A model generated the notes under the pieces. That model saw only the letters and a program-made list of their open reading frames with translations, was not told the origin of the DNA and did not search any database. Below are positions 20,810-51,549 of a stretch of DNA of 64,000 bases, piece by piece. The stretch lies in the NCBI GenBank assembly GCA_040285825.1, contig JAUPSS010000006.1, forward strand, positions 1,302,001 through 1,366,000. Direction: 5' to 3'. Position 1 is the first letter of the stretch. The number at the start of each line of letters is the position of its first letter. The DNA comes from Eukaryota sp. TZLM1-RC. Lineage: Eukaryota > Protista > Metamonada: BaSk clade. Both the position numbers and the translations under genes were made by a program.

Positions 20810-23800
20810 ATGAATTCTATATTATTGGCTTCTTCAATGAATCAATCTGCAGTTGAATTTACTCTGAATCTTTTCAACAGCGGTGAAGAGAGCAATGTCC
20901 ATGATCTAAAACGTTCATTGGCCAAGTCTGCTAGTCATAAAAGATTCTGGAAAGTGTTCGCTGCTCTTCACAATTCGCCGGGTCAGTGTCCTTCTTTGGC
21001 CAAATGATCCACTTGGTCCGCTTACCTCATCATCGGTGTGGACGAGGATGGAATTGGTGTGGACGAGGATGAAACTTCTTTTTATACATCTTCTGCATTT
21101 AAAACTGATTTACGTTCTGTTGCTCTTCACTTCCAAGAAGGCAAAGCTTTACCTTCTCACATCAACTTAGAGAATTCTTTACCAGATGATAAAATTTTTT
21201 CCGAGTTACTTTCTTCGATCTTTAAATGCATTCCTCGTGTTGAGTTTCACGCATTGTTTACTGTCAGTTTGGATGTGGACAAATCTGAGCAGAACAAAAA
21301 ACCACCAACGAGAACTGTCTTTCTACTTGAGATTTGCTGTGGTTTGGCTCTCTTATGTTATAGCAATCAGATTTGGGTCAGAAATGGATCAATTTGTTCA
21401 AAATTTGAGGAATTGACTGTTTCACAGCAACTTTCTGTTGTTCAGAAATTTCCTTCATGTGATGTTTTCTCCTTTTTGTCGCGTGTAGTTGTTATTTTCA
21501 ATTCTTCTTCTTGCTTTGCTCAGGACTCTTATTCTCTTCCAAGACATTCTTTGTTATTCAATTTTATTTCGTTGCCATGGAAATTTGTTCTTGACGTTTC
21601 ACCAACTGCCATGTCCGATTTTCATTCTAGGGGCTTTTACAAACATGTGCCTGATCTCCTTTCCAGTGAAACTTCTTTCACTAATTCGCTTCATGAGCTC
21701 AAATTGTCAGATCAGGATATTGTTTCGTTTGGTTTAAATATACCATTTATTTCATGTAATAGTAGCCTAGATCTGGCAATTCTTTCATGGTGCTCGTTCT
21801 ACCGTAGAAATATTTGCTATCGGTTTGGTTTTCAAGGCGAATCAGGTTTATCATCATTTACTCAGTTACCTTTTACCTGTCATTCTGAAGATGATCTTGC
21901 CAAACATTTCAAAAGTTTTCTTTCAGGTGATAAGCCCCATTTTTCACTCTTAGGAACTGATTGCGTGATTCCTTCTCATTATGGAATTGTTCGCTTACAA
22001 TCGAACTTGAAAGCTGTCTTCAAGGAAGATAAATGGAAAATTGGAGTTTTTGAAGTTGAGAAAACAGAACACTGCAATGGTTGTCGCACTGCCGTGCTGA
22101 CTTCGTTGGCTAAAATTGGTGATCAAGAACGTTTTTCATCTTTTGTGATTAATTCAGATACTAGAGAAGATCAGCGAAAAGCATTGTCTGTGATTTTAAC
22201 TTCTTCAATTGATTACATAGTCATTTTCATTGATGGTATTTCCAAAAAACATTTTGTAAAAGATATTTTAGAGTTTCAATCACGAGAATGGCTATCAAAA
22301 CCGTCCAAGCTATTATTTGTAGTCACTAAGTTTACCTCATCTCCAAAATATGATTGCAACAATCGCAGTGCTATGCATCATCAACCATTTTTCCCAAAGG
22401 GAGAAAGGGCGGAACTTTCGTTCTGGAACTACCATTATAATCCTTATAACATTCCAGGTTTCTTTACCAATTTTGAAAGCAACCTCAAGAATCTTTGTTG
22501 TAGATTTAAACTACCTGAACTTGAAAACGCTACTTCTTATGAACATTCCTTATTACTCTATGTTGGGGTCCTTGTATTCCGAAGGTCAACCGATAAAATG
22601 AAAGAGACTGTTGGCTATCTTATTAAACAGTTTTTTACAAGACCTGTAGGAGATCATGAATTATCGAATGATTTCATGCCTTATACCGAATTTATAATAC
22701 GCTGTGCACAAGCTTTTTCTTCTGAAATTAGAATTGAGTTTAACAAATTGAAATACATTCAACAAAGTCATCCAGCGATTGGAAGACTTATACTGAGAAA
22801 TGACAACAAATATTTCATCAACCATTTTGTAGCTGATTTTGTTATTACACATTGCATCAAAACTGTTGATCCAGCCACTTGGACACTTCTAGATCAGCAG
22901 AAGCTTCAACACCGACTATTGAATATTATCAAGTTTTCGTTGGAGCATCTTAAAATCGCTTTACGCGTTGATTCTGATACTGACTTCCTAATAGATATCG
23001 TTGAGTGCGTCGTATTACCATTATGCTTATACTGTCGTACAGCAGAAAGTCTTTCTGTAAAAGATTGTACGGATTTTCTCCACACCTTGAGTCAGATACA
23101 ATGTACATCGGGTTGTGTCAGGTTTGGAAAGCGTTTGTTGTCTACTCGTCTTTTATGTGTTTTATTTAAACGCTTTCTTAAGTCTAAACAATCAAGGCAA
23201 ATTCTTAATAACTGGATTTCCGAATTTGGTATATCCCTTGACAATGTGAAAATAGCTATCGATAACAGTTCTAGGACTAACCCGAGTTCTGTATTTACTG
23301 AACTTGGTGATTTTTATCGCTACAGAGATCGCAGTCAAGATGTGCAGAACAAAGATCAAAATATACAAAATGTAGTTGATTGTTATTCCTATGCTTTGCA
23401 GTATGATCCTTCCAATACTTTTGCAAAACATGGCCTTTTATCTGCTTTTTATTTTGCTTGTGAGTGGAATATTAGCAAAAGGTTTCTTTTGGATGAACTT
23501 GACTTCAAACTTGATTTTATTCTTTTTGTTCATCTGTTAGGTAATGCTGCTTCGCTTCGTGGCAAATCTGTGATTTTAAAAGAAGAGCTTGCCAGTCTAT
23601 CCTCCACAAAAGAAACCAGTAATACTCTTGTCCTCTGTTTCATTTGTGATCTTATTAAAAATGGCCGTGTTCTGCCTGATGCCCAAGAAGCAAAAATCTT
23701 GTTCAGTTCTTCAACTGCTTATTCTTCCTCCTGCAAGGTTTTAACTGCACTATTTTCGGTCTTTCGTTTCCTTTTTCAATGGTCACATCATCCTGAAGCA

Positions 23801-24217
23801 GATGAATCGAATTTTGTTGAGGACTGTTATCTCTTTGATCAAAATGTTTCTCTGCTGAGTGATTTCTTCAAAGAAGATGTTGAACAATTTGCTGAGTTAG
23901 ATTTTGAAACAAAAAGATACCTGAATACATTTATCATTCATCTGTCAGCATTGAGGTATCTAATTTGTTTTACATTGGACAAATTGGATTTCAAGAAGTT
24001 TTGGATATACCATAGATTTTGTGATCTTAAAGACAGTCCCAATGTGCTACCCAAAAGTAGTTTGTTTGTCCTGAAAAGGACCATTGATAACAATTTTGTC
24101 TTGGTAAATAAGCAAGTTGATGTTGATTGTATTGATTCATTGAATTTTAATGATCATTATTTTTGTTTCACTTCAACAATAGCTTCTGAATGGGGGGTAG
24201 CATTGTTAAAGAACTAA
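20810..24217 (+). CDS. Family B SAMD9-like protein (AlbA_2/Schlafen nuclease, SIR2-like, STAND NTPase, TPR), about 1135 aa with one in-frame TGA at 21005-21007
   Basis: ORFs 20759-21007 and 21038-24217 share a frame. Read through: GEESNVHDLKRS...FWKVFAALHNSPG...AYLIIGVDEDG (AlbA_2); FLLEI...IWVRNGS; LFNFISLPWKFVLDVSP; HCNGCRTAVL and IVIFID (degenerate Walker A/B); ELGDFYRY...YSYALQYDPSNTFAKHG (TPR). Confidence 0.75.
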
Positions 24218-26541: not shown

Positions 26542-27041
26542 CATTATCATCCATAACTACTAACTTGCGTAAAGTGATGGTCTGTTGGTAAATTCCAATT
26601 AAAAGAACGTGGAGGATAGAGAAGATAGGTTGGATTTTTAAGGTGGCGACAACAAAGGAGAGGGTCTCGGAGACGACCAGAGGGGATTGGAAGATAGATT
26701 GGAGAAGGAAGAGAACAGGTGTTGATTGAGAGATATCCAAAGTGAAGGAGGGAGAGAACATAAGGGAAGAAAAAGAGGAGAGTAGGAGTGCGATGTGAGT
26801 AAGAGAGTGTTGTAGAGAAAAAGAGAAGAAGTGATGGAAAAGGAGAGAGCAAAGTCACCGAGGGTTTCGTTACATGGAGAATAAGCTTTCTGTGATCTTC
26901 CAAAGCGGATGTGTAAGTTGTTGAAGAAAGGAATGACATCAATGATCTACTACTCTATGATAAGTGTTCTGGAAGATGCTCCATTTTTTTAAACGCCTTC
27001 CGGATCAAACAGGTTTTTGTAGATTTGCCTCTGCTATAACA

Positions 27042-28940
27042 ATGTCGATTGAACCACCAGTCAAAAGAATGCATCTTCGTTCACTGAGTGACAATGTCCG
27101 AGAATCATCTTTGGGCTCATCTCATCCAATTCGTTCTAGTTTAGGGCAAACCTCCTTCCATTCTACTTCAACTCCCAGTAAACCTCAATCAGCACCGCCT
27201 CGCTTTTTGGACAGATCCATAAACATGACTTGCACCTTCCACTCAGCTGTATATTCTCCTCTCTTCAAGTCGGACACCAGTCTTCAAGATGTGAGGCGTC
27301 GCATCCTTTCGGCACTATCCAATCATCTTGATCTCATGGATTTGATAGCTGATGCTTTGAAACAACTGCGTCAGTTCCTCAGCCAATCAGATAATGAGTT
27401 ATCTCTCCCTGTTTTTTATGCTTCAAAAACTCTTTCCCGCCTTCTTTCCGCTGCTTTACATAGTCTTAAGCGTCTTCCTGAAGTCCAAAACGGTGATGGC
27501 TCAGGTTCTAAGTGTCTCCAAGGTCCTGTAGGCGTTGGTAAATCCACTTTTTTAAGGGCTGTCTTCTGCTTCAGTTGTCTTCTTTTCCCTGACTATAGAA
27601 CTGTTATGCATGACTTTGAATGTGACAATTCTTCTGATCTAGCGACTATTGAAAGTCTAATCGAGATGAAGCAAGCTGATGATGATATACAAAACAATCG
27701 TTGTAAGTCTTTGCCCACAGTGCTGCTCCTTGATGAAATTAATGCCGTATATGATTTTCCCAACACAGTAAAAGCAGTGGCGTTCATCAAATCACTTTTA
27801 GTTTTTGCAAAGTCTGCAAAAAACTTTTCCATAATCACTGGTTCAACTTCTTTTCTTTTTGAACGAGTATTCAATGCAGTAGACAGTGAGTTCCGCTCCA
27901 AGGGCTTTCCATCTTTGAATCATTCTGTTTTTCTTGCTGAACATTTAATGCCGATCCGTGATATGAATGAGTTCAAAAAGTTCTGTGATATTGCGTTCCC
28001 AAATTCTACCATTCACAATTACGGGGATGCATTTAATGCGACAGGTGGTGTTGGTAGATACCTCAACCATTATATTTCGAATGACCAAAGAGAATTAAGT
28101 GTTGATCACTTGTTTGCAGCTCTGGATGATCCGAAATTTGAAGCTTTTTGCTCATTTTTTGTACAACTGGACCGTCATAATGTTCCAATTTCCCAAATCA
28201 AATCATTAAATATTCGGAATTCGGACATTAACCGTTTTAAGGATAAATCTCTTATTCTTGAACAAGATAGTCTTTATCACCTCTTGATTCCAAAACATAT
28301 GGAATACCTATAGAAATATTTCGAGAAGGAGGAAAACTCATTCATGTATGCTTTTCGAATTCTACTACATGGTTTTGTTAATGGTAGTGCTGGAGCACAG
28401 GTTGAGTCCTATATTATTCAAGGTTTGTATGAAAAGCCAGTTGCTATGAAAAAAATTCATCGGTCAAACAATCGTTACTATTTTGAAGATGGTTCTGATG
28501 TTGTTTCATCTGATTTTCCACTGTTTCAAAGTCATGTTTTTCGAATGGCTCAAGATACGGGAGTAGATGGTTTTAATCTCGAGCCCACTGATAATGATGA
28601 AGAATACCAATTACACTGCATTCAAGTCAAAGTGGGAAATCATAACTCAAAATTAACTAATGGGAATTTTGATAATGCTAACGACAGAACAAACACGCTT
28701 TCGGGAATCTACAACAAGTACAAAAAAGGGTTTCAAAACATTGTTGAATTTTTCAAACAGATTTTCCCCGACGTTTCTCTGACTCAAGGTAATTTCTACT
28801 TGTACAGCAATAAGGAGTTGTCATCCCACACTTTTAATTCATTACCCCCTAATTTCAATCTTCTGGTTGGGGAATCCTTTTGGGATGGACTAGGTCTTAG
28901 TGCCCACCAAATTGATTCTCTTGGAATTTGCAGAAATTGA
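27042..28940 (+). pseudogene. Family C Crinkler/RHS-type P-loop NTPase plus PD-(D/E)xK nuclease, copy 1 (632 codons, in-frame TAG at 28311-28313)
   Basis: Walker A GPVGVGKST, Walker B VLLLDE, IITGS, TGGVGR, nuclease-like GVDGF...CIQVK. TAG corresponds to AAG in the other copies. Confidence 0.8.
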
Positions 28941-30914: not shown

Positions 30915-31050
30915 AGTTGTGGATGACATTGATTTATTTTTGAGTTGAAATAAACTCATCATATATTTGACTTGTTTTATACACCAATCTGCCGTTGAAA
31001 TTACTCTGAATCTTTTCAACTGAGCTAAAGAGAGCAATATCTACGATCCC
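30915..31050 (+). pseudogene. Decayed 5' end of a family B gene (also about 50250-50385)
   Basis: CAATCTGCCGTTGAAATTACTCTGAATCTTTTCAAC...AAGAGAGCAAT matches 20843-20905; ATG lost and a stop is present. Confidence 0.65.
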
Positions 31051-31439
31051 GAACAAGCATTTTCTCTTTCATTTAGAGGCGCAAACTCTCTATGTATTAA
31101 AAACTCAATAATATAAATAATTGCTGATTCCTCCATAACTTAATGGGCAAGGGAAAACCTATAAATCAATGCCTACCTGGAATTGGCCAGAATCGTGGGT
31201 GAATTGCCCGAATGCACTTAAACATTCAAACTCGAATACATGCTCATGGAGATCAGGGACTTGTCTTACATGACGTGGACTGAGAAACAATAGAAACTCT
31301 TACAGGAAAAATACAACTCAAAGATGAGACTAAATAAGTTGCTTCTTATATAATAAATTAAGATTTATTTGTTGAACAGACAAAATTTAGAAACAGGCAA
31401 CAAACCTTAACTAAAGCTGTTACCTACACAAACCCCATC

Positions 31440-31800: not shown

Positions 31801-32213
31801 TCGACATCGTGACTTTTAATATTGGAAATTTTTGACAGAACTCAACGTACACTCAAGTACGACTTTTTAAAGAAAAATAAATACTTGCAGCTTTTCAGAA
31901 CTATGACCCAGTTGCTAAAGAAAGAAAGGAGGAAACGTCTGATATGAAGACTAATGGAGGCATTTGAAAAAATAGGTGCATTCCACTTCGATTCATTGGA
32001 ACCTCAAATAGTGAAAATTCTCAACAGCATGAGGAGCTTAAAGAAGCAAGCTCAAAACGGGAGATAGAAATCATCAAGATTTGCACAACAGAGACTGAAG
32101 AAGGAATGGCTGAATGGCGTTAGTTCACACATAAATAAAGAGTAACACGGAAGAGTAGATAGAAGGATGAAATGATGTCTCACTAGAAATCAAATTGTGT
32201 TAGATCCATAAAC

Positions 32214-33930
32214 ATGAATTGCACCTTCCACTCAGCTGTCTATTCTCCTCTCTTCAATTCGGACACCAGTCTTCAAGATGTGAGGCGTCGCATCCTTTCG
32301 GCACTAGTCAATCAATCTGATCTCACGGATTTGATAGCTGATGGCTGGACACAACTGCGTCAGTTCCTCAGCCAATCAGATAATGAGTTATCTCTCCCTG
32401 TTTTTTATGCTTCAAAAACTCTTTCCCGCCTTCTTTCCGCTGCTTTACATAGTCTTAAGCGTCTTCCTGAAGTCCAAAACGGTGATGGCTCAGGTTCTAA
32501 ATGTCTCCAAGGTCCTGTAGGCGTTGGTAAATCCACTTTTTTAAGGGCTGTCTTCTGCTTCAGTTGTCTTCTTTTCCCTAACTATAGAACTGTTATGCAT
32601 GACTTTGAATGTGACAATTCTTCTGATCTAGCGACTATTGAAAGTCTAATCGAGATGAAGCAAGCTGATGATGATATACAAAACAATCGTTGTAAGTCTT
32701 TGCCCACAGTGCTGCTCCTTGATGAAATTAATGCCGTCTATGATTTTCCCAACACAGTAAAAGCAGTGGCGTTCATCAAATCACTTTTAGTTTTTGCAAA
32801 GTCTGCAAAAAACTTTTCTATAATCACTGGTTCAACTTCTTTTCTTTTTGAACGAGTATTCAATGCAGTAGACAGTGAGTTCCGCTCCAAGGGCTTTCCA
32901 TCTTTGAATCATTCTGTTTTTCTTGCTGAACATTTAATGCCGATCCGTGATATGAATGAGTTCAAAAAGTTCTGTGATATTGCGTTCCCAAATTCTACCA
33001 TTCACAATTACGGGGATGCATTTAATGCGACAGGTGGTGTTGGTAGATACCTCAACCATTATATTTCGAATGACCAAAGAGAATTCAGTGTTGATCACTT
33101 GTTTGCAGCTCTGGATGATCCGAAATTTGAAGCTTTTTGCTCATTTTTTGTACAACTGGACCGTCATAATGTTCCAATTTCCCAAATCAAATCATTAAAT
33201 ATTCGGAATTCGGACATTAACCGTTTTAAGGATAAATCTCTTATTCTTGAACAAGATAGTCTTTATCACCTCTTGATTCCAAAACATATGGAATACCTAA
33301 AGAAATATTTCGAGAAGGAGGAAAACTCATTCATGTATGCTTTTCGAATTCTACTACATGGTTTTGTTAATGGTAGTGCTGGAGCACAGGTTGAGTCCTA
33401 TATTATTCAAGGTTTGTATGAAAAGCCAGTTGCTATGAAAAAAAATTCATCGGTCAAACAATCGTTACTATTTTGAAGATGGTTCTGATGTTGTTTCATC
33501 TGATTTTCCACTGTTTCAAAGTCATGTTTTTCGAATGGCTCAAGATACGGGAGTAGATGGTTTTAATCTCGAGCCCACTGATAATGATGAAGAATACCAA
33601 TTACACTGCATTCAAGTCAAAGTGGGAAATCATAACTCAAAATTAACTAATGGGAATTTTGATAATGCTAACGACAGAACAAACACGCTTTCGGGAATCT
33701 ACAACAAGTACAAAAAAGGGTTTCAAAACATTGTTGAATTTTTCAAACAGATTTTCCCCGACGTTTCTCTGACTCAAGGTAATTTCTACTTGTACAGCAA
33801 TAAGGAGTTGTCATCTCACACTTTCAATTCATTACCCCCTAATTTCAATCTTATGGTTGGGGAATCCTTTTGGGATGGACTAGGTCTTAGTGCCCACCAA
33901 ATTGATTCTCTTGGAATTTGCAGAAATTGA
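32214..33930 (+). CDS. Family C copy 2, lacking the N-terminal 61 aa; single frameshift in an A run near 33440 (possible sequencing error)
   Basis: ORFs 32214-33476 and 33535-33930, near-identical to 51550-53268. Confidence 0.75.
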
Positions 33931-36900
33931 ATTGATGTTACAAGAGTTCAATTTTTCTTTCATCATCTTTTTAATAATTTTTTACATTGGGGACAAGTTT
34001 CATAAATCATATCTTCTTTATTGATAAACAGTGATTCGTTAAACTCATCTTTCAATTGTGCTAATTTCAATTACTGATTCCAATAAAATTTATCTTGTTC
34101 TTCAGTGTAATCACTTTCACATTTATCTTTAACTATTTCTTTTAATTCAAGTAAATTTGAAGGTTTGTCTTTTAATATTGTATTCATTTCATTAACGATA
34201 TCTTCTTATACTTGCAAGATATTGTAAAATCCTTTCTAATTGTATTTCACTTTCTAAAATAGTTGTTGGTATTGAAATTCAAGAAAAAACATCTTCTAAA
34301 AAAGCTGCATTACATAAAATCGAAGATTTAGTAAACCCAATTCACCCACCCAATTCAATTCAATTTTGCACCCAATTCAGCAGAACAATAAACATGACTT
34401 CGTATTAAAAATTCATTTACGTTCAAATAAGGAGGAAAAAATTTGACCCGAAGTTTGTTGAAAGATCTACAAAAATCAAGAGCTACTGAAGGAGGAGTTG
34501 ACCTTAAAATAGGAGTGAATTTTCCAGAATAACAAATTATTTAAATAAAAAATTTCATGTGTTTTTCAATATCACATTCAGCAATAAATCTAAGGTTATT
34601 GTCAAAATTCTTCAATAAATTGTTCAACTGGGAATAAAATTCATCTAAATTACCTAACCAACATCCAAGAACTTGAACGCTTGTCGTTCAAAATTAATAA
34701 AGGGAATTTGAACACCATCAATCAATTAACAACAAGTACAAAAAAGGGTTTCAAAACATTGTTGAATTTTTCAAACAGATTTTACCCGACGTTTCTCTGA
34801 CTCAAGGTAATTTCTACTTGTACAGCAATAAGGAGTTGTCATCCCACACTTTTAATTCATTACCCCCTTATTTCAATCTTCTGGTTGGGGAATCCTTTTG
34901 GGATGGACTAGGTCTTAGTGCCCACCAAATTGATTCTCTTGGAATTTGCAGAAATTGAATTGATGTTACAAGAGTTCAATTTTTCTTTCATCATCTTTTT
35001 AATAATTTTTTACATTGAGGACAAGTTTCATAAATCATATCTTCTTTATTGATAAACAGTGATTCGTTAAACTCATCTTTCAATTGTGCTAATTTCAATT
35101 TCTGATTCCAATAAAATTTATCTTGTTCTTCAATTTTCTTCAAATTTTTCTTTCATCATCTTTTTAATAATTTTTTTACATTGGGGACAAGTTTCATAAA
35201 TCATATCTTCTTCATTGATAAACAGTGATTCGTTAAACTCATCTTTGAATTGTGCTAATTTCAATTTCTGATTCCAATAAAATTTATCTTGTTCTTCAGT
35301 GTAATCACTTTCACATTTATCTTTAACTATTTCTTTTAATTCAAGTAAATTTGAAGGTTTGTCTTTTAATAATGTATTCATTTCATTAACGATATCTTCT
35401 TATGCTTGCAAGATATTGTAAAATCCGTTCTAATTGTATTTCACTTTCTAAAATAGTTGTTGGTATTGAAATTCAAGAAAAAACATCTTCTAAAAAAGCT
35501 GCATTACATAAAATTGAAGATTTAGTAAACCCAATTCACCCACCCAATTCAATTCAATTTTGCACCCAATTCAGCAGAACGATAAACATGACTTCGTATT
35601 AAAAATTCATTTACGTCCAATGAAGAAGGAAAAAATTTGACCCGAAGTTTGTTGAGAGATCTACAAAAATCAAGAGCTACTGAAGGAGGAGTTGACCTTA
35701 AAATAGGAGTGAATTTTCCAGAATAACAAATTATTTAAATAAAAAATTTGATGTGTTTTTCAATATCACATTCAGCAATAAATCTAAGGTTATTGTCAAA
35801 ATTCTTCAATAAATTGTTCAACTGGGAATAAAATTCATCTAAATTACCTAACCAACATCCAAGAACTTGAACGCTTGTCGTTCAAAATTAATAAAGGAAT
35901 TTGAGCACCATCAATCAATTAACAACAAGTACAAAAAAGGGTTTCAAAACATTGTTGAATTTTTCAAACAGATTTTCCCCGACGTTTCTCTGACTCAAGG
36001 CAATTTCTACTTGTACAGCAATAAGGAGTTGTCATCTCACACTTTCAATTCATTACCCTCTAATTTCAATCTTACGGTTGGGGAATCCTTTTGGGATGGA
36101 CTAGGTCTTAGTGCCCACCAAATTGATTCTCTTGGAATTTGCAGAAATTCAATTGATGTTACAAGAGTTCAATTTTTCTTTCATCATCTTTTTAATAATT
36201 TTTTACATTGGGGACAAGTTTCATAAATCATATCTTCTTTATTGATAAACAGTGATTCGTTAAACTCATCTTTCAATTGTGTTAATTTCAATTTCTGATT
36301 CCAATTAAATTTATCTTGTTCTTCAGTGTAATTACTTTCACATTTATCTTTAACTATTTCTTTTAATTCAAGTAAATTTGAAGGTTTGTCTTTTAATATT
36401 GTATTCATTTCATTAACGATATCTTCTTATACTTGCAAGATATTGTAAAATCCTTTCTAATTGTATTTCACTTTCTAAAATAGTTGTTGGTATTGAAATT
36501 CAAGAAAAAACATCTTCTAAAAAAGCTGCATTACATAAAATCGAAGATTTAGTAAACCCAATTCACCCACCCAATTCAATTCAATTTTGCACCCAATTCA
36601 GCAGAACGATAAACATGACTTCGTATTAAAAATTCATTTACTTCCAATGAAGAAGGAAAAAATTTGACCCGAAGTTTGTTGAAAGATCTACAAAAATCAA
36701 GAGCTACTGAAGGAGGAGTTGACCTTAAAATATGAGTGAAATTTCCAGAATAACAAATTATTTAAATAAAAAATTTGATGTGTTTTTCAATATCACATTC
36801 AGCAATAAATCTAAGGTTATTGTCAAAATTCTTCAATAAATTGTTCAACTGGGAATAAAATTCACCTAAATTACCTAACCAACATCCAAGAACTTGAACG

Positions 36901-39900
36901 CTTGTTGTTCAAAATTAATAAAGGTGTTTTGAGCACCATCAATCAATCAACAACAATTACAAAAAAGGGTTTCAAAACATTGTTGAATTTTTCAAACAGA
37001 TTTTCCCCGACGTTTCTCTGACTCAAGGTAATTTCTACTTGTACAGCAATAAGGAGTTGTCATCTCACACTTTCAATTCATTACCCCCTTATTTCAATCT
37101 TCTGGTTGAGGAATCCTTTTGGGATGGACTAGGTCTTAGTGCCCACCAAATGGATTCTCTTGGAATTTGCAGAAATTGAATTGATGTTACAAGAGTTCAA
37201 TTTTTCTTTCATCATCTTTTTAATAATTTTTTTACATTGGGGACAAGTTTCATAAATCATATCTTCTTCATTGATAAACAGTGATTCGTTAAACTCATCT
37301 TTCAATTGTGCTAATTTCAATTTCTGATTCCAATAAAATTTATCTTGTTCTTCAGTGTAATCACTTTCACATTTATCTTTAACCATTTCTTTTAATTCAA
37401 GTAAATTTGAAAATTTGTCTTTTAATAATGTATTCATTTCATTAATGATATCTTATGCTTGCAAGACATTGTAAAATCCTTTCCAATTGTATTTCACTTT
37501 CTAAAATAGTTGTTGGTATTAAAATTCAAGAAAAAACATCTTCTAAAAAATCTGCATTACATAAAATCGCAGAATTTGTAAACCCAATTCACCCACCCAA
37601 TTCAATTCAATTTTGCACCCAATTCAGCAGAACAATAAACATGACTTCGTATTAAAAATTCATTTACGTCCAATGAAGAAGGAAAAAATTTGACCCGAAG
37701 TTTGTTGAAAGATCTACAAAAATCAAGAGCTACTGAAGGAGGAGTTGACCTTAAAATAGGAGTGAATTTTCCAGAATAACAAATTATTTAAATAAAAAAT
37801 TTGATGTGTTTTTCAATATCACATTCAGCAATAAATCTAAGGTTATTGTCAAAATTCTTCAATAAATTGTTCAACTGGGAATAAAATTCATCTCAATTAC
37901 CTAACCAACATCCAAGAACTTGAACGCTTGTCGTTCAAAATTAATAAAGGGAATTTGAACACCATCAATCAATTAACAACAAGTACAAAAAAGGGTTTCA
38001 AAACATTGTTGAATTTTTCAAACAGATTTTCCCCGACGTTTCTCTGACTCAAGGTAATTTCTACTTGTACAGCAATAAGGAGTTGTCATCTCACACTTTC
38101 AATTCATTACCCCCTAATTTCAATCTTATGGTTGGGGAATCCTTTTGGGATGGACTAGGTCTTAGTGCCCACCAAATTGATTCTCTTGGAATTTGCAGAA
38201 ATTGAATTGATGTTACAAGAGTTCAATTATTCTTTCATCATCTTTTTGATAATTGTTTTACATTGGGGACAAGTTTCATAAATCATATCTTCTTCATTGA
38301 TAAACAGTGATTCGTTAAACTCCTCTTTCAATTGTGCTAATTTCAATTTCTGATTCCAATAAAATTTATCTTGTTCTTCAGTGTAATCACTTTCACATTT
38401 ATCTTTAACCATTTCTTTTAATTCAAGTAAATTTGAAAATTTGTCTTTTAATAATGTATTCATTTCATTAATGATATCTTATGCTTGCAAGACATTGTAA
38501 AATCCTTTCTAATTGTATTTCACTTTCTAAAATAGTTGTTGGTATTGAAATTCAAGAAAAAACATCTTCTAAAAAATCTGCATTACATAAAATCGCAGAT
38601 TTTGTAAACCCAATTCACCCACCCAATTCAATTCAATTTTGCACCCAATTCAGCAGAACAATAAACATGACTTCGTATTAAAAAAATTCATTTACGTCCA
38701 ATGAAGAAGGAAAAAAAATTTGACCCGAAGTTTGTTGAAAGATCTACAAAAAAATCAAGAGCTACTGAAGGAGGAGTTGACCTTAAAATAGGAGTGAATT
38801 TTTCCAGAATAACAAATTATTTAAATAAAAAAAATTTGATGTGTTTTCAATATCACATTCAGCAATAAATCTAAGGTTATTGTCAAAATTCTTCAATAAA
38901 TTGTTCAACTGGGAATAAAAATTCATCTAAATTACCTAACCAACATCCAAGAACTTGAACGCTTGTCGTTCAAAATTAATAAAGGGAATTTGAACACCAT
39001 CAATCAATTAACAACAAGTACAAAAAAGGGTTTCAAAACATTGTTGAATTTTTCAAACAGATTTTCCCCGACGTTTCTCTGACTCAAGGTAATTTCTACT
39101 TGTACAGCAATAAGGAGTTGTCATCTCACACTTTCAATTCATTACCCCCTAATTTCAATCTTATGGTTGGGGAATCCTTTTGGGATGGGCTAGGTCTTGG
39201 TGCCCACCAAATTGATTCTATTGGAATTTGCAGAAATTGAATTGATGTTACAAGAGTTCAATTTTTCTTTCATCCTCTTTTTAATAATTTTTTACATTGG
39301 GGACAAGTTTCATAAATCATATCTTCTTCATTGATAAACAGTGATTCGTTAAACTCATCTTTCAATTGTGCTAATTTCAATTTCTGATTCCAATAAAATT
39401 TATCTTGTTCTTCAGTGTAATTACTTTCACATTTATCTTTAACCATTTCTTTTAATTCAAGTAAATTTGAAAATTTTTCTTTTAATAATGTATTCATTTC
39501 ATTAATGATATCTTATGCTTGCAAGACATTGTAAAATATTTTCTAATTGTATTTCACTTTCTAAAATAGTTGTTGGTATTGAAATTCAAGAAAAAACATC
39601 TTCTAAAAAAGCTGCATTACATAAAATCGCAGATTTTGTAAACCCAATTCACCCACCCAATTCAATTCAATTTTGCACCCAATTCAGCAGAACAATAAAC
39701 ATGACTTCGTATTAAAAATTCATTTACGTCCAATGAAGAAGGAAAAAATTTGACCCGAAGTTTGTTGAAAGATCTACAAAAATCAAGAGCTACTGAAGGA
39801 GGAGTTGACCTTAAAATAGGAGTGAATTTTCCAGAATAACAAATTATTTAAATAAAAAATTTGATGTGTTTTTCAATATCACATTCAGCAATAAATCTAA

Positions 39901-42535
39901 GGTTATTGTCAAAATTCTTCAATAAATTGTTCAACTGGGAATAAAATTCATCTAAATTACCTAACCAACATCCTAGAACTTGAACGCTTGTCGTTCAAAA
40001 TTAATAAAGGGAATTTGAACACCATCAATCAATTAACAACAAGTACAAAAAAGGGTTTCAAAACATTGTTGAATTTTTTTCAAACAGATTTTTCCCCGAC
40101 GTTTCTCTGACTCAAGGTAATTTCTACTTGTACAGCAATAAGGAGTTGTCATCTCACACTTTCAATTCATTACCCCCTAATTTCAATTTTATGGTTGGGG
40201 AATCCTTTTGGGATGGGCTAGGTCTTGGTGCCCACCAAATTGATTCTATTGGAATTTGCAGAAATTGAATTGATGTTACAAGAGTTCAATTTTTCTTTCA
40301 TCCTCTTTTTAATAATTTTTTACATTGGGGACAAGTTTCATAAATCATATCTTCTTCATTGATAAACAGTGATTCGTTAAACTCATCTTTCAATTGTGCT
40401 AATTTCAATTTCTGATTCCAATAAAATTTATCTTGTTCTTCAGTGTAATTACTTTCACATTTATCTTTAACCATTTCTTTTAATTCAAGTAAATTTGAAA
40501 ATTTTTCTTTTAATAATGTATTCATTTCATTAATGATATCTTATGCTTGCAAGACATTGTAAAATCCTTTCTAATTGTATTTCACTTTCTAAAATAGTTG
40601 TTGGTATTGAAATTCAAGAAAAAAAACATCTTCTAAAAAAAGCTGCATTACATAAAAATCGCAGATTTTTGTAAAACCCAATTCACCCACCCAATTCAAT
40701 TCAATTTTGCACCCAATTCAGCAGAACAATAAACATGACTTCGTATTAAAAATTCATTTACGTCCAATGAAGAAGGAAAAAATTTGACCCGAAGTTTGTT
40801 GAAAGATCTACAAAAATCAAGAGCTACTGAAGGAGGAGTTGACCTTAAAATAGGAGTGAATTTTCCAGAATAACAAATTATTTAAATAAAAAATTTGATG
40901 TGTTTTTCAATATCACATTCAGCAATAAATCTAAGGTTATTGTCAAAATTCTTCAATAAATTGTTCAACTGGGAATAAAATTCATCTAAATTACCTAACC
41001 AACATCCAAGAACTTGAACGCTTGTCGTTCAAAATTAATAAAGGGAATTTGAACACCATCAATCAATTAACAACAAGTACAAAAAAGGGTTTCAAAACAT
41101 TGTTGAATTTTTCAAACAGATTTTCCCCGACGTTTCTCTGACTCAAGGTAATTTCTACTTGTACAGCAATAAGGAGTTGTCATCTCACACTTTCAATTCA
41201 TTACCCCCTAATTTCAATCTTATGGTTGGGGAATCCTTTTGGGATGGACTAGGTCTTGGTGCCCACCAAATTGATTCTATTGGAATTTGCAGAAATTGAA
41301 TTGATGTTACAAGAGTTCAATTTTTCTTTCATCATCTTTTCAATAATTTTTTACATTGGGGACAAGTTTCATAAATCATATCTTCTTCATTGATAAACAG
41401 TGATTCGTTAAATTGTGCTAATTTCAATTTCTGATTCCAATAAAATTTATCTTGTTCTTCAGTGTAATTACTTTCACATTTATCTTTAACCATTTCTTTT
41501 AATTCAAGTAAATTTGAAAATTTTTCTTTTAATAATGTATTCATTTCATTAATGATATCTTATGCTTGCAAGACATTGTAAAATCCTTTCTAATTGTATT
41601 TCACTTTCTAAAATAGTTGTTGGTATTGAAATTCAAGAAAAAACATCTTCTAAAAAAGCTGCATTACATAAAACCGCAGATTTTGTAAACCCAATTCACC
41701 CACCCAATTCAATTCAATTTTGCACCCAATTCAGCAGAACAATAAACATGACTTCGTATTAAAAATTCATTTACGTCCAATGAAGAAGGAAAAAATTTGA
41801 CCCGAAGTTTGTTGAAAGATCTACAAAAATCAAGAGCTACTGAAGGAGGAGTTGACCTTAAAATAGGAGTGAATTTTCCAGAATAACAAATTATTTAAAT
41901 AAAAAATTTGATGTGTTTTTCAATATCACATTCAGTAATAAATCTAAGGTTATTGTCAAAATTCTTCAATAAATTGTTCAACTGGGAATAAAATTCATCT
42001 AAATTACCTAACCAACATCCAAGAACTTGAACGCTTGTCGTTCAAAATTAATAAAGGGAATTTGAACACCATCAATCAATTAACAACAAGTACAAAAAAG
42101 GGTTTCAAAACATTGTTGAATTTTTCAAACAGATTTTCCCCGACGTTTCTCTGACTCAAGGTAATTTCTACTTGTACAGCAATAAGGAGTTGTCATCTCA
42201 CACTTTCAATTCATTACCCCCTAATTTCAATCTTATGGTTGGGGAATCCTTTTGGGATGGGCTAGGTCTTGGTGCCCACCAAATTGATTCTATTGGAATT
42301 TGCAGAAATTGAATTGATGTTACAAGAGTTCAATTTTTCTTTCATCCTCTTTTTAATAATTTTTTACATTGGGGACAAGTTTCATAAATCATATCTTCTT
42401 CATTGATAAACAGTGATTCGTTAAACTCATCTTTCAATTGTGCTAATTTCAATTTCTGATTCCAATAAAATTTTATCTTGTTCTTCAATTTTCATCAAAT
42501 TTTTCTTTCATCATCTTTTTAATTATTTTTTACAT
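33700..42535. repeat. Tandem array of about 8.5 units of about 1.03 kb: family C 3' end, unknown antisense acidic fragment, antisense RT-thumb fragment
   Basis: Junction CACCATCAATCAATTAACAACAAGTAC recurs at about 34720, 35915, 36945 (variant), 37970, 39005, 40030, 41065 and 42075. The minus strand reads FLGCWLGN...EKHMKF...ILRSTPP...GFTKSSILCNAAF. Confidence 0.95.
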
Positions 42536-42881
42536 TTTTTTTAAAAAACTGGAATATTTATTGAGATAAAAAAACCCATCTAGAATTCATTATCCTCCAA
42601 ACAAGCGTCATTATTACTGAACCTACTCACAGCATCACGTTCATATTCTACACCAATAGCTAAAAGTGCCTTTGAAATCATTGTTGGAATAGACTTGAAA
42701 ATGCAAAAAAACAATTCTATTTAACCAGAAAGTGGAGTTCATTGTTTTACCAGACCTATTCAGTAACACTTTTTTAAAATTTTCAAAAAAGTGCAACCCT
42801 GAAGGTCCAATATTGCCAAAAAGAGAAATTGCAAACGGCACAAACTGATATTTCACATGTTGCACTCTACCTAACTGTGCC
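42536..42881 (-). mobile_element. F2 retrotransposon 3' fragment
   Basis: AQLGRVQHVKYQFVPFAISLFGNIGP...; matches 13820-14155 and 24670-25005. Confidence 0.85.
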
Positions 42882-42907
42882 TTCAAGTCTTTTCAACCTA
42901 ATTGCAG

Positions 42908-43521
42908 ATCTTCTTTGCTTTCTTGTTATATGTATGAACAATAATGGAGAACCTAGGCTTGTTTTTGATCCAAAACTGAAGCTTCCAACACAGTTTGCAC
43001 TTCTTTGTGGTTCATTCAACCCTCTTCACTCTGGACATCTGTCTATGGCTGAGTCGTTTATGTCTCAGTTCCATCTTCCAGTCTTTGCCGAAATAGCAGC
43101 AAATAATGCTGATAAGGGCTGGATTTCAGAAGATGAGCTGAATCAACGATTGGGACAATTCACTAGTGATTCACTGTTTTCAGGAGTTTTGGTAACATTA
43201 TTTCCTACGTTTTTTGAGAAAACATCCTTTATTTTATCTTTTTCACAGTGGAAACCCTTATTATTGGTTATGACACCGCCATTCGAATCATTAATCCCAA
43301 GTACTATAAGTCTACCACAGAAATGAACTCCCTCTTCTCTTGGTTTGGTAACTTAGGAGGAAGGTTTGTTGTAGCTGGAAGATTGGTAGATGGTGAGTTC
43401 ATACAGTGGGATTGTGAAGAACATACTGATATCTTTTTGAGTTTGGACAACTTTAGATATAAGCAGCACAGAAATTCGATCTAAAAAACTCAGTACATTG
43501 AGATGTGTAAATAGATTATAA
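42908..43521 (+). pseudogene. HxGH nucleotidylyltransferase (NMNAT/POF1-like), probably 5' truncated, two frameshifts
   Basis: GSFNPLHSGH, EIAANNADKG, PTFFEK, IIGYDTAIRIINPKYY, VAGR, and DISSTEIR in a third frame from 43456; preceded by an intron-like 3' end CCTAATTGCAG. Confidence 0.8.
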
Positions 43522-44172: not shown

Positions 44173-44885
44173 AAATCAATCATCCGAGAAATTAAGTAAA
44201 ATTTTTGAAGACAAATGCTTTGACAACAAATGGTCCAAGGCTTTGTCAGCTTTAAGTCCCGGGGTTAAAGCACCTAATAATGATAATACAATAGATAAAC
44301 TAACAATACTTCATCCTTATGAAGACCCTATAATGGATCAAAATTTTTATGGCACATACTGGGAAAATTATCCATTGATGCCATCAGAAGTTTTCTCGGT
44401 GATCAAAAAAAACCACGTGGTAAGTCTGCCGGACTTTCTAGTTTTACTATTGATCATGTAAAAGCCGCGATTATTTCTTCAGAAGATTGCCTTGGTTTAT
44501 TGACCAAATTTTTCAACCAAATATTATCTGGTCAACGCAAATACCCAGAAGAATTAAGAAGTTCTCGTTTGACTGCACTTGTCAAAAATTCAAAAATGGA
44601 TGTTCGTCCTATTGCAGTCTCTGAGTGCTTACACAATATTTTTTCTGCATGTTGCTTAAGCAGGTTCAATGAAAAAGCGAAAAAGATTTTATTACCCTTT
44701 CAATATGGTATAAATACTACAGATGGAGTCTCTTCAGCGATTTTTGCTACTGATGTCTTATTTCGTCAAAATGAATCCAATGTTTGCATGTCATTGGATT
44801 TTAGTACTGCTTTCAATTCACTAAGTCGTCGCAGTATCCATGGTGCTCTATTGCAATATATGCCGGAATTAATACCATATTTTCA
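44173..44885 (+). mobile_element. F1 internal fragment (pre-RT and RT domains 0-3)
   Basis: Matches about 56660-57372; VRPIAV, PFQYG, SLDFS.AFNS. Confidence 0.9.
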
Positions 44886-45256
44886 GGGCTGAATAATCGC
44901 CCTTGTAATAATGTCATTTTCCCTTTTCTAGAGCTTGTCAGTTTTCTCAGAAAACTATCCCTCCATTTAATTTTCACAAAACTTCATCGGGAATACTACG
45001 TGAATTAATTAATTGGTTGACCCAATTGTATAATCAGGAGACACATGCCAATGTTCATCCTTAACTAATTGTTGTTGGCTATTCTATGATTATTTTAAAT
45101 AAACTGCATACCAGGTTTGAAATTGGTACTTCTCGACCTTACCCTTGCATGACAGAATAATGTTGCTCTAGCTCTCTAAGTTTTCCTTTTCTCAATTGCT
45201 CACGTAAAGTGTCTCCAGTTGACCAAACACAAAGAGAATTTAGTGTTGATCACTTG

Positions 45257-46291
45257 TTTCCATCTTTAAATCATTCTTTTTTTCTTGCTGAACATTTAAT
45301 GCCGATCCGTGATATGAATGAGTTCAAAAAGTTCTGTGATATTGCGTTCCCAAATTCTACCATTCACAATTACGGGGATGCATTTAATGCGACAGGTGGT
45401 GTTGGTAGATACCTCAACCATTATATTTCGAATGACCAAAGAGAATTAAGTGTTGATCACTTGTTTGCAGCTCTGGATGATCCGAAATTTGAAGCTTTTT
45501 GCTCATTTTTTGTACAACTGGACCGTCATAATGTTCCAATTTCCCAAATCAAATCATTAAATATTCGGAATTCGGACATTAACCGTTTTAAGGATAAATC
45601 TCTTATTCTTGAACAAGATAGTCTTTATCACCTCTTGATTCCAAAACATATGGAATACCTAAAGAAATATTTCGAGAAGGAGGAAAACTCATTCATGTAT
45701 GCTTTTCGAATTCTACTACATGGTTTTGTTAATGGTAGTGCTGGAGCACAGGTTGAGTCCTATATTATTCAAGGTTTGTATGAAAAGCCAGTTGCTATGA
45801 AAAAAATTCATCGGTCAAACAATCGTTACTATTTTGAAGATGGTTCTGATGTTGTTTCATCTGATTTTCCACTGTTTCAAAGTCATGTTTTTCGAATGGC
45901 TCAAGATACGGGAGTAGATGGTTTTAATCTCGAGCCCACTGATAATGATGAAGAATACCAATTACACTGCATTCAAGTCAAAGTGGGAAATCATAACTCA
46001 AAATTAACTAATGGGAATTTTGATAATGCTAACGACAGAACAAACACGCTTTCGGGAATCTACAACAAGTACAAAAAAGGGTTTCAAAACATTGTTGAAT
46101 TTTTCAAACAGATTTTACCCGACGTTTCTCTGACTCAAGGTAATTTCTACTTGTACAGCAATAAGGAGTTGTCATCTCACACTTTCAATTCATTACCCCC
46201 TTATTTCAATCTTCTGGTTGGGGAATCCTTTTGGGATGGACTAGGTCTTAGTGCCCACCAAATTGATTCTCTTGGAATTTGCAGAAATTGA
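45257..46291 (+). pseudogene. Family C copy 3, 5' truncated (no Walker A/B; nuclease domain intact)
   Basis: ORF 45209-46291 is near-identical to the C-terminal about 345 aa of family C. Confidence 0.8.
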
Positions 46292-47855
46292 ATTGATGTT
46301 ACAAGAGTTCAATTTTTCTTTCATCATCTTTTTAATAATTTTTTTACATTGGGGACAAGTTTCATAAATCATATCTTCTTCATTGATAAACAGTGATTCG
46401 TTAAACTCATCTTTCAATTGTGCTAATTTCCATTTCAGATTCCAATAAAATTTATCTTGTTCTTCAATTTTCTTCAAATTTTTCTTTCATCATCTTTTTA
46501 ATAATTTTTTTACATTGGGGACAAGTTTCATAAATCATATCTTCTTCATTGATAAACAGTGATTCGTTAAACTCATCTTTCAATTGTGCTAATTTCAATT
46601 TCTGATTCCAATATAATTTATCTTGTTCTTCAGTGTAATCACTTTCACATTTATCTTTAACTATTTCTTTTAATTCAAGTAAATTTGAAGGCTTGTCTTT
46701 TAATAATGTATTCATTTCATTAACGATATCTTCTTATACTTGCAAGATATTGTAAAATCCTTTCTATTTGTATTTCACTTTCTAAAATAGTTGTTGGTAT
46801 TGAAATTCAAGAAAAAACATCTTCTAAAAAAGCTGCATTACATAAAATCGAAGATTTAGTAAACTCAATTCACCCACCCAATTCAATTCAATTTTGCACC
46901 CAATTCAGCAGAACAATAAACATGACTTCGTATTAAAAATTCATTTACGTTCAAATAAGGAGAAAAAAAGTTGACCCGAAGTTTGTTGAAAGATCTACAA
47001 AAATCAAGAGCTACTGAAGGAGGAGTTGACCTTAAAATAGGAGTGAATTTTCCAGAATAACAAATTATTTAAATACAAAATTTCATGTGTTTTTCAATAT
47101 CACATTCAGCAATAAATCTAAGGTTATTGTCAAAATTCTTCAATAAATTGTTCAACTGGGAATAAAATTCATCTAAATTACCTAACCAACATCCAAGAAC
47201 TTGAACGCTTGTCGTTCAAAATTAATAAAGGGAATTTGAGCACCATCAATCAATTAACAACAAGTACAAAATAGGGTTTCAAAACATTGTTGAATTTTTC
47301 AAACAGATTTTCCCCGACGTTTCTCTGACTCAAGGTAATTTCTACTTGTACAGCAATAAGGAGTTGTCATCCCACACTTTCAATTCATTACCCCCTTATT
47401 TCAATCTTCTGGTTGGGGAATCCTTTTGGGATGGACTAGGTCTTAGTGCCCACCAAATTGATTCTCTTGGAATTTGCAGAAATTGAATTGATGTTACAAG
47501 AGTTCAATTTTTCTTTCATCATCTTTTTAATAATTTTTTACATTGGGGACATGTTTCATAAATCATATCTTCTTCATTGATAAACAGTGATTCGTTAAAC
47601 TCATCTTTCAATTGTGCTAATTTCCATTTCAGATTCCAATAAAATTTATCTTGTTCTTCAGTGTAATCACTTTCACATTTATCTTTAACTATTTCATTTA
47701 ATTCAAGTAAATTTCAAGGTTTGTTTTTTAATAATGTATTCATTTCATTAACGATATCTTCTTATGCTTGCAAGACATTGTAAAATCCTTTCTAATTGTA
47801 TTTCAGTTTCTAAAAATAAAATAGTTGTTGGTATTGAAATTCAAGAAAAAACATC
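46062..47855. repeat. Further about 1.5 units of the 1.03 kb repeat
   Basis: Same unit and junction (about 47250), including the internal about 170 bp duplication also seen at 35130. Confidence 0.9.
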
Positions 47856-48099
47856 TGAAGTCATTGAGGCAACAGAAGCACCTTCAATAGTTTTAATACT
47901 AAATTGGAAAGGCTTCAAATAGTCCCTTGCCTTAGTAGAAATTCCGTTAAAAATAAGAGAAGAAAGCAATCTCGTTAAACTCCCCAATAGCAATTGGTCT
48001 AACTTCATCAGGTTTGTTGCTTTTTCCTGGTTTAATTAAAGCAACTAACCGAGCAGCAGTCAATTCAGGTGGAGGAACATAATTCAAACACATTAAACT

Positions 48100-49795: not shown

Positions 49796-51549
49796 ACACA
49801 TTAAGCTTTGAAAAAAATGGCAAGATCCTCAGAAAATTCTTGAGCATTTTTACAAGCAAGTATTAACAAATCAAAAGAAATGCCTGAGGAACCAGCAGCT
49901 TTTCCTTTTGGCAATTTAGCAATAGCATTGAATTCTTCTTGAGCCTTAAAAGGATTTTTGAGCCAATATTCACAAATTGGCGGCTTAATTGGGCAAAAAG
50001 TTTCAGTTGGATGAAGCACTTTCAGTTTTTCAACAGTTTTTCTTTATATAAAGAGTTGTAAATTTATATTTAGTGTGCATTTATTTTTGATCCTCTCTCT
50101 TGTTCCTGTTTCTATATATAATGACCAATTTTGTCAAAAATAAAAACATTTAATAGAAATTATTCGTCTAGTGTAAATTAAATCGAATAATTTATTTGAA
50201 AAAACTTAACGTTTACTAAAACGTATTGTTTAAAGGAAGAAGTGGAAGAAAGTTGTGGATGACATTGATTTATTTTTGAGTTGAAATAAACTCATCATAT
50301 ATTTGACTTGTTTTATACACCAATCTGCCGTTGAAATTACTCTGAATCTTTTCAACTGAGCTAAAGAGAGCAATATCTACGATCCCGAACAAGCATTTTC
50401 TCTTTCATTTAGAGGCGCAAACTCTCTATGTATTAAAAACTCAATAATATAAATAATTGCTGATTCCTCCATAACTTAATGGGCAAGGGAAAACCTATAA
50501 ATCAATGCCTACCTGGAATTGGCCAGAATCGTGGGTGAATTGCCCGAATGCACTTAAACATTCAAACTCGAATACATGCTCATGGAGATCAGGGACTTGT
50601 CTTACATGACGTGGACTGAGAAACAATAGAAACTCTTACAGGAAAAATACAACTCAAAGATGAGACTAAATAAGTTGCTTCTTATATAATAAATTAAGAT
50701 TTATTTGTTGAACAGACAAAATTTAGAAACAGGCAACAAACCTTAACTAAAGCTGTTACCTACACAAACCCCATCAATTGAATGATATGAGATTTTAACT
50801 ATTCACATACAAAACAACTGGCATGTTGTAAAACTCCGTAATATTATTCAAAATGTGGTCATTAACACAAGGGAGAGCTTTCAACAATGAAAACTCAATT
50901 CTGTTTTTCCAAATCAAAAAATCGAATGTACGTCCACTTTCTCTGAGAAGATTTCCTAAATCAATAAAAATTGAGATCTTCGATTTCAAGGGTACCAAAA
51001 ATACAAATAGCAAACTGGAACTATTATTGGAATTAGCAAATGTTCTGTTTTAGCTCCTATAGATGTTTTTTTTGTTTGCCGTTCAATTGCTGTCTCTAGC
51101 GTTGGAGCAGGTCCACACCCAATCATCAACTCTGAATCGACATCGTGACTTTTAATATTGGAAATTTTTGACAGAACTCAACGTACACTCAAGTACGACT
51201 TTTTAAAGAAAAATAAATACTTGCAGCTTTTCAGAACTATGACCCAGTTGCTAAAGAAAGAAAGGAGGAAACGTCTGATATGAAGACTAATGGAGGCATT
51301 TGAAAAAATAGGTGCATTCCACTTCGATTCATTGGAACCTCAAATAGTGAAAATTCTCAACAGCATGAGGAGCTTAAAGAAGCAAGCTCAAAACGGGAGA
51401 TAGAAATCATCAAGATTTGCACAACAGAGACTGAAGAAGGAATGGCTGAATGGCGTTAGTTCACACATAAATAAAGAGTAACACGGAAGAGTAGATAGAA
51501 GGATGAAATGATGTCTCACTAAAAATCAAATTGTGTTAGATCCATAAAC

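Follow-up and report, generated by a model that had tools for sequence, protein, structure and literature searches.

The stretch of DNA considered here, referred to below as the window, comprises 64,000 nucleotides from Skoliomonas litria TZLM1-RC (contig JAUPSS010000006.1, positions 1,302,001 to 1,366,000), a free-living anaerobic soda-lake metamonad; the host is thus a unicellular eukaryote, as an earlier note on this DNA had supposed. The S. litria assembly consists of 16 contigs totalling 31.9 Mb, contains 55% repeats and is Nanopore-based with short-read polishing (genome project PMC11316075). Within the window, two open reading frames (ORFs) of 82 (20759-21007) and 1059 (21038-24217) amino acids share one frame and, according to both the ORF listing and the translation, are separated by a single TGA at 21005-21007. 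The region from 20837 to 24217 probably represents one gene, a member of a small, lineage-restricted S. litria family whose proteins have the layout of SAMD9 and Avs9 with the SAM domain missing, and of which the window copy is broken by a nonsense codon.

Translation of positions 20810 to 24217 yields 1136 codons, among which the TGA is the sole internal stop, and the frame closes at the TAA at 24215-24217. All 1069 codons that follow the TGA are open, and an open frame of that length is unexpected by chance in DNA with a guanine-plus-cytosine (GC) content of 35%. That the joined reading goes beyond chance is indicated further by an intact paralogue and by a tandem fragment beside it, both of which carry sense codons across the point of the TGA. 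The likely true start is the ATG at 20837 (MNQSAVEF...), which is conserved with the intact paralogue. The earlier note had read the two ORFs as one gene extending from 20810 to 24217; the translation and the read-through of the paralogue bear out the single gene and its end, while its start is better placed at the conserved ATG. All of the motifs quoted there are present, namely GEESNVHDLKRS, FAALHNS, YLIIGVDEDG, VVIFNS, FISLPWKFVLDVSP, FLSGDK and HCNGCRTAVL.

An intron of the GT-AG type that would excise the TGA was considered and rejected: the only AG within 20984-21045 sits inside the candidate donor GTCAG, and use of the next AG after 21045 would give a 65-nt intron that breaks the frame. 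Likewise rejected was the use of TGA as a sense codon, of which there is no instance among the other 1069 codons of the gene; treating TGA as sense lengthens the ORFs of the window no more than does treating TAA as sense. The deposited NCBI model is an 868-residue protein that starts at Met259 (ATG 21611) and is 100% identical to the product of window positions 21611-24214. As this model begins at Met259, the N-terminal AlbA_2 part of the gene described below is left out of the annotation, and the effector domain that the earlier note found hidden by the ORF track is therefore hidden by the public record as well.

Relatives of the gene come from Skoliomonas. Specifically, phmmer run exhaustively over 1.8 billion cluster representatives returned three, all from the assemblies of TZLM1-RC and of GEM-RC1, a second Skoliomonas species in which a related fragment is present. 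Word-indexed searches of 5.8 billion proteins returned only the family's own Skoliomonas clusters, a profile that included a divergent set of window paralogues (designated Family A) found no match outside Skoliomonas among 5.8 billion proteins, and tblastn against plasmids gave chance matches only. The working representative of the family is KAL0224434.1, an intact paralogue of 1118 residues on another contig (locus L001:5297-8650), which is 54% identical to the window gene over its full length and has an uninterrupted N-terminus. Beside it, head to head, lie a tandem partial copy (L001:9923-10699, plus strand) and an inverted partial copy (L001:10696-11415, minus strand), each of which corresponds, at 95-99% identity, to the first 230-245 codons of the intact paralogue. 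A much closer paralogue, 98.9% identical to the window gene, is found at L003:8693-12525 (contig JAUPSS010000012.1) and carries TTA at the position of the stop; this copy lacks one base of a TT run upstream, as well as about 290 bp equivalent to window positions 22665-22954. The public annotation splits it into the fragments P9112_000717 and P9112_000718, and on the same locus a neighbouring segment equivalent to window positions 15517-19071 sits inverted on the other side.

Comparison of the window gene with the intact paralogue gives a ratio of non-synonymous to synonymous substitution rates (dN/dS) of 0.25 overall, with a minimum of 0.15 in the first 215 codons, while over 552 codons the 99% identical copy differs from it by 7 synonymous and 7 non-synonymous changes, against a neutral ratio of about 1 to 3.6. 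These values indicate that the family is protein-coding and constrained, and that the window copy was disrupted recently. Since the paralogues read through the position of the TGA with sense codons, the window copy is to be regarded as the nonsense-interrupted member of a real gene family, and, since a single base separates the TGA from a sense codon found in a paralogue, the copy as assembled cannot make the nuclease-bearing protein. It is probably a recent pseudogene or, at best, the source of an N-terminally truncated product of 868 residues; readthrough of the TGA appears highly improbable. The broken state of this copy is a point that the earlier note did not consider.

A less probable, though by no means negligible, alternative is that the window copy is intact, the TGA being an error of assembly or polishing or a polymorphism between paralogues, such that the cell makes the full 1126-residue AlbA_2 protein. 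Several observations weigh against a broken copy in this respect. The public short-read contigs, which are of low depth, break on both sides of 20947-21022 (76 bases, with the TGA inside), exactly where the paralogues differ; the binned read depths at this place are fully accounted for by the two flanking contigs, and, because near-identical paralogues differ there at several sites, the gap resembles a bubble in the assembly graph rather than missing DNA. An intact copy would also accord with the occurrence of a lone stop in 1126 codons of which 1069 others are open, with the single base that separates the TGA from the TTA of the 99% identical paralogue, with a Nanopore-based, short-read-polished assembly of a genome that is 55% repetitive, and with the 7 synonymous to 7 non-synonymous changes accumulated since duplication, which suggest recent constraint. 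Polishing with Illumina reads, however, seldom leaves substitution errors, clear decay is seen in the sister copy and in many fragments nearby, and the RNA-guided pipeline of the annotators set the start of the model at Met259 rather than at 20837. A recent nonsense mutation in the window copy is accordingly the preferred reading.

The protein was never joined across the TGA: each side was searched on its own, and tests of the N-terminus were made with the intact paralogue. As judged by sequence comparison, the N-terminal domain is very probably an AlbA_2 nuclease domain in which the acidic catalytic residues are kept. Pfam searches with the split window pieces gave no match, and those with the N-terminus of the intact paralogue gave SLFN_AlbA_2 (PF04326) as the sole match, with an E of 0.051 and 14.6 bits, under the gathering threshold of 25.3 bits; the profile check proposed in the earlier note thus named the expected family without attaining its threshold. 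PADLOC and NCBIfam scans of the window pieces and of the intact paralogue returned chance-level matches only. As a reference for more sensitive comparison, 120 bacterial loci bearing the motif AFANTxGGxhxhGV were reduced to 77 non-redundant AlbA_2 domain segments, of which 10 of 10 sampled pass Pfam PF04326 (E 1e-10 to 1e-23). Against these 77 domains, hhalign aligned the family N-terminus with a probability of 95% (E 5e-8, score 48), and a second comparison, with 65 AlbA_2 domains, gave a probability of 88% and an E of 3e-6. The real score of 48 compares with 10.7 for the reversed alignment, at most 16.9 for 30 column shuffles and at most 15.1 for seven further segments of 215 residues from elsewhere in the protein. 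Both hmmsearch and hhalign place the product of the codons upstream of the TGA on the start of the AlbA_2 profile, and in a comparison of ESM features all ten of the best neighbours of residues 1-215 are AlbA_2 clusters.

The alignments contain four motifs in the AlbA_2 order, G-E-x4-D-x-K, AALHNS, YLIIGVDE and IWVRNG (Table 1). The E, D and K of GEESNVHDLK, together with the D of IIGVD, coincide with the near-invariant columns E24 and K31 of the reference and with its GV-D position, and the AlbA_2/Schlafen signature claimed in the earlier note is upheld by the hhalign probabilities, the ESM neighbours and the sub-threshold Pfam match alike. An AlphaFold2 model of residues 1-345 has a mean predicted local distance difference test score (pLDDT) of 38, and Foldseek matches from so poor a model are meaningless. 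With the bacterial AlbA_2 domains of PF04326, which stand alone or are linked to HATPase_c_4, the Skoliomonas domain shares the order of the four motifs and the hhalign probabilities of 88-95%; it differs from them in scoring below the gathering threshold, in a 13-residue insertion that replaces the NTxGG turn, and in an entirely different C-terminal partner.

Table 1. Coordinates, within the window, of the gene, its predicted parts and detached pieces of it
Feature	Position	Strand	Remarks
Whole gene	20837..24217	+	1126 codons plus TAA, the in-frame TGA being codon 57; Skoliomonas-specific AlbA_2 / NOD-like / TPR-like family
First 56 codons, upstream of the TGA	20837..21004	+	First two AlbA_2 motifs; 75% identity to the N-terminus of the intact paralogue
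GEESNVHDLKRS, E-x4-D-x-K acidic catalytic motif (predicted)	20882..20917	+	Identical in the 54%-identical paralogue; hhalign aligns E/D/K with the E..EFK columns of the 65-77 reference AlbA_2 domains
FAALHNS, counterpart of AlbA_2 'AFANT(xGG)'	20957..20977	+	13-residue insertion in place of the GG turn
In-frame TGA, the gene's sole stop	21005..21007	+	TTA (Leu) in the 99%-identical copy L003, AAA (Lys) in the intact paralogue
YLIIGVDEDG, AlbA_2 'lliGVdD.G' strand	21023..21052	+	Predicted third catalytic Asp; equivalent of Avs9 D45
IWVRNGS, counterpart of C-terminal AlbA_2 'vYvRvGs'	21371..21391	+	Found by local hmmsearch and global hhalign; weak alone; domain end at about residue 205
Inter-domain region of about 150 residues, in the place of SAMD9's SIR2 and delta	21461..21916	+	No match in Pfam, PDB or PADLOC; AlphaFold2 pLDDT <50; contains ATG 21611, the start of the deposited model
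HCNGCRTAVL, Walker-A-like loop	22070..22099	+	Between a predicted strand and helix; without lysine; R/H/Y at the Mg-binding Thr position
IVIFIDG, Walker-B-like hydrophobic strand ending in Asp	22217..22237	+	48 residues past the Thr of the loop
LLFVVTK, putative sensor-1-like strand ending in K	22310..22330	+	R in the paralogue; 31-32 residues past the Walker-B Asp
TPR-like helical repeat array	22892..23575	+	The only part modelled at pLDDT 50-70
C-terminal part of about 50 residues, predicted beta strands, in the place of SAMD9's OB	24065..24214	+	Low-confidence AlphaFold2 secondary structure only
Detached 60-codon piece of the C-terminal region	14751..15008	+	93% identical
Decayed piece of the gene's 5' end	30961..31071	+	49% identical, with stops; identical fragment at 50297-50407
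Detached copy of the last ~190 codons	55244..55809	+	88-97% identical, in two frames

The remainder of the protein is harder to place. In ESM comparisons, the 1069-residue piece after the TGA has as its nearest neighbours a 997-residue bacterial cluster with AlbA_2 and nSTAND_NTPase5 and several chordate SAMD9 clusters (0.89-0.93), followed by clusters with nSTAND5 only or with nSTAND5 and TPR (0.85-0.86). The AlphaFold2 model of residues 344-1126 has a mean pLDDT of 42, and a Foldseek search of 350,542 PDB chains ranked first the human SAMD9 monomer determined by cryo-electron microscopy (9zjr), with an E of 3.7e-4 over 737 aligned columns of a poor model. This was the only match at an E of 1e-3 or below, and five more SAMD9 chains stand within the top 20. 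The Foldseek result is supportive rather than decisive because the AlphaFold2 models are poor (pLDDT 38 and 42), template modelling (TM) scores are low and matches to TPR and HAT proteins lie close behind; the low TM to SAMD9 is itself attributable to the poor model. At the level of sequence, three elements, a strand-loop-helix, hhhhD and hhhh[TS][KR], are common to two paralogue families that are 25% identical. In three species or copies the Walker-A-like loop keeps the form C-x-G-C-[RHY]-T-A, for which Family A has C-I-G-L-T-T-A.

Two known systems offer themselves for comparison. Bacterial Avs9 proteins are antiviral STAND proteins with the order AlbA_2-SIR2-STAND-TPR-OB (Nat Ecol Evol 2025, PMC12680541), in which the acidic site of AlbA_2 consists of E14, D19 and D45 (PMC12680541). 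Like Avs9, the Skoliomonas protein is a single large polypeptide, both being about 1000-1100 residues long, lacks a SAM domain and has at its N-terminus an AlbA_2 domain with an E-x4-D ... D site (E18, D23 and D68 in the numbering of the intact paralogue), such that the spacing from E to D is that of E14/D19 and the later Asp corresponds to D45. It differs from Avs9 in its eukaryotic host, in a more degenerate Walker A and in the expansion and decay of the family within a repeat-rich genome; no match at sequence level was obtained, the comparison being with the published description of Avs9. The absence of a SAM domain is evident from the protein itself, which opens directly with the AlbA_2 motifs, and from in-frame stops upstream of the ATG of the paralogue.

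A Walker A that lacks its lysine, GGT standing for GKT, is the defining mark of the SAMD9 family (PMC5445408, PMC13600222); in SAMD9, H737 substitutes for the Walker A lysine, D799 and D800 form the Walker B and R837 is the sensor-1 residue (PMC13600222). Human SAMD9 and SAMD9L (9zjr, 9zjw; PMC13600222) share with the Skoliomonas protein the order of AlbA_2 tRNase, NOD, TPR and small C-terminal domain, of which the tRNase activity, the NOD, the TPR and the C-terminal domain are predicted in Skoliomonas. Similarly, both lack the Walker A lysine and have comparable spacing from P-loop to Walker B and sensor-1: T745 and D799 are 54 residues apart in SAMD9 (48 in Skoliomonas) and R837 lies 37 residues past D800 (31-32 in Skoliomonas) (PMC13600222). 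In contrast to SAMD9, the Skoliomonas protein lacks a SAM domain, its stretch from AlbA_2 to the C-terminus is shorter by about 300 residues, its Walker A is more degenerate, with neither the GGT signature (here G-C-[RHY]-T) nor H737 conserved, and its identity to SAMD9 is 11-13%, at a TM of 0.1-0.2 from a poor model. For Avs9, structural similarity to SAMD9 with a TM of about 0.5 or more has been reported. Taken together, these comparisons lend moderate support to a SAMD9/Avs9-type architecture in the Skoliomonas family.

An objection to that architecture is the possibility, which we consider unlikely, that the AlbA_2 nuclease sits on a lineage-specific helical scaffold that is not of the STAND/NOD type, the likeness to SAMD9 being superficial and due to a shared AlbA_2 domain and generic repeats. 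Several results weigh on that side. Neither hidden Markov models (HMMs) nor BLAST link the protein to SAMD9, nSTAND, NB-ARC, SIR2, TPR or OB in Pfam, PADLOC, NCBIfam, the PDB or the protein collections, so that the NTPase goes undetected by any profile, and phmmer and profile searches of the PDB did not match SAMD9 chains. An hhalign comparison of the central region with 56 metagenomic NB-ARC domains was not significant (probability 0.6%, score 18), its best path aligning IVIFIDG with hhhhDD, and the strand that follows, correctly. The Walker A has neither the lysine nor the Mg-binding Thr; as the Thr position is occupied by R, H or Y and the upstream His of SAMD9 is not conserved, nucleotide binding by the central module is doubtful and may be altogether absent. 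The spacing from AlbA_2 to the P-loop is about 210 residues, as against about 357 in SAMD9, and is thus shorter by about 150 residues, which leaves too little room for a complete SIR2 and delta domain. In the Foldseek search, TM values are 0.1-0.2 and unrelated TPR/HAT-repeat proteins lie within a factor of ten of SAMD9 in E-value, while two thirds of the AlbA_2 domain remain in the piece submitted to ESM and could supply part of its signal.

Against a non-STAND scaffold, however, the ESM neighbours include nSTAND5-only and nSTAND5+TPR clusters that contain no AlbA_2, the SAMD9 alignments extend over more than 700 columns where other Foldseek matches cover 640 or fewer, and the three conserved elements of the two paralogue families (strand-loop-helix, hhhhD, hhhh[TS][KR]) follow one another in an order and at distances like those of SAMD9. 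On balance, a SAMD9-like NOD module is the preferred reading of the central region. The earlier note's description of a SAM-less SAMD9-like protein accordingly holds for the missing SAM domain and for the ESM and Foldseek neighbours (SAMD9 and AlbA_2+nSTAND5) and finds no link by HMM or BLAST; its STAND NTPase is unconfirmed by any HMM or profile comparison, the Walker A being more degenerate than that of SAMD9, and the SAMD9 blocks that it cited (ILVTNK, FLKEIKWFAVLEFDP, DFYRGGK and PGCGGTTLAM) are not found in the portion of the published SAMD9 family alignment available to us. That the long ORF is a chance open frame or a decayed repeat, as might be suspected in a region dense with repeats and pseudogene fragments, can be dismissed: it is already refuted by the 54% identity to an intact paralogue and the dN/dS of 0.25. 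The 1069 open codons, unexpected at 35% GC, and the related fragment in GEM-RC1 also speak against it.

The surroundings of the gene make the window a region of gene birth and death across which pieces of the gene are scattered (Table 1). Family A (5410-12375, 17441-19071 and 62285-64000) is a second family of paralogues with the same architecture and about 25% identity to the window gene. Its AlbA_2 motifs are degenerate (EQDHLDL[RK]RS, SLHNT and YIILLSEE), its Walker A lacks lysine (CIGLTTA), and all of its copies in the window are split over several frames. A repeated ORF family, with copies 97-99% identical at 26964-28940, 32187-33927, 45161-46288 and 51523-53265, gives weak matches to AAA_14/AAA ATPases that fall slightly below the Pfam thresholds, and two of these copies are preceded, at a distance of about 1.2 kb, by decayed fragments of the 5' end of the gene under study. 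A reverse-transcriptase fragment (RVT_1, E 3e-12) at 57149-57817 is found amid related decayed ORFs (44323-44889, 56653-57159 and 58509-58985). Positions 34000-42000 and 46000-48000 are low in GC (28-29%) and show a GC skew that is strongly and evenly negative (-0.13 to -0.16), a pattern that a satellite or a long tandem repeat could produce. An ORF at 42829-43323 has a cytidylyltransferase-like match to PF01467 that exceeds the threshold, at 26 bits, and may be the one piece of ordinary housekeeping sequence in this stretch.

If the proposed architecture is correct, the family protein would consist of an AlbA_2-type nuclease at the N-terminus, followed by a SAMD9-like NOD module whose Walker A lacks lysine, a TPR-like array and a small C-terminal domain. 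By analogy with SAMD9 and Avs9, the C-terminal sensor would hold the protein in a closed, autoinhibited state until some signal of viral or mobile-element origin induced oligomerisation, whereupon the assembled AlbA_2 domains might cut tRNA or other RNA and so shut down translation.

Published distributions give such a protein no place among protists. The SAMD9 family was described by Mekhedov et al. as occurring in animals and bacteria only (PMC5445408), and a structural survey of 2025 found relatives of SAMD9 and Avs9 in animals, bacteria and archaea but, even when searches were relaxed, no significant match among plants, algae, fungi or protozoa; its authors argued that SAMD9 and Avs9 are convergent (PMC12680541). 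A metamonad family with a SAM-less layout like that of Avs9 would be the first exception to this distribution. The odds are roughly even that Skoliomonas possesses a true homologue of the SAMD9/Avs9 antiviral sensor-nucleases, the first eukaryotic one outside animals, either taken up from bacteria by its host, a bacterivorous flagellate, or retained from an early eukaryote, and present as at least two paralogue families undergoing rapid birth and death.

From a practical standpoint, the predicted effector domain is missing from the deposited annotation of the window gene. SAMD9 and SAMD9L are major human antiviral and disease genes whose evolutionary origin is debated, and protist immunity is almost unknown. 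True homology in Skoliomonas would contradict a distribution limited to metazoa and prokaryotes and reopen the question of SAMD9-Avs9 convergence; a third lineage, that of a deep-branching free-living protist, would allow phylogeny and structure to distinguish between horizontal gene transfer, inheritance and convergence. Such a lineage would further suggest that protists possess a defence of the abortive-infection type directed at tRNA.

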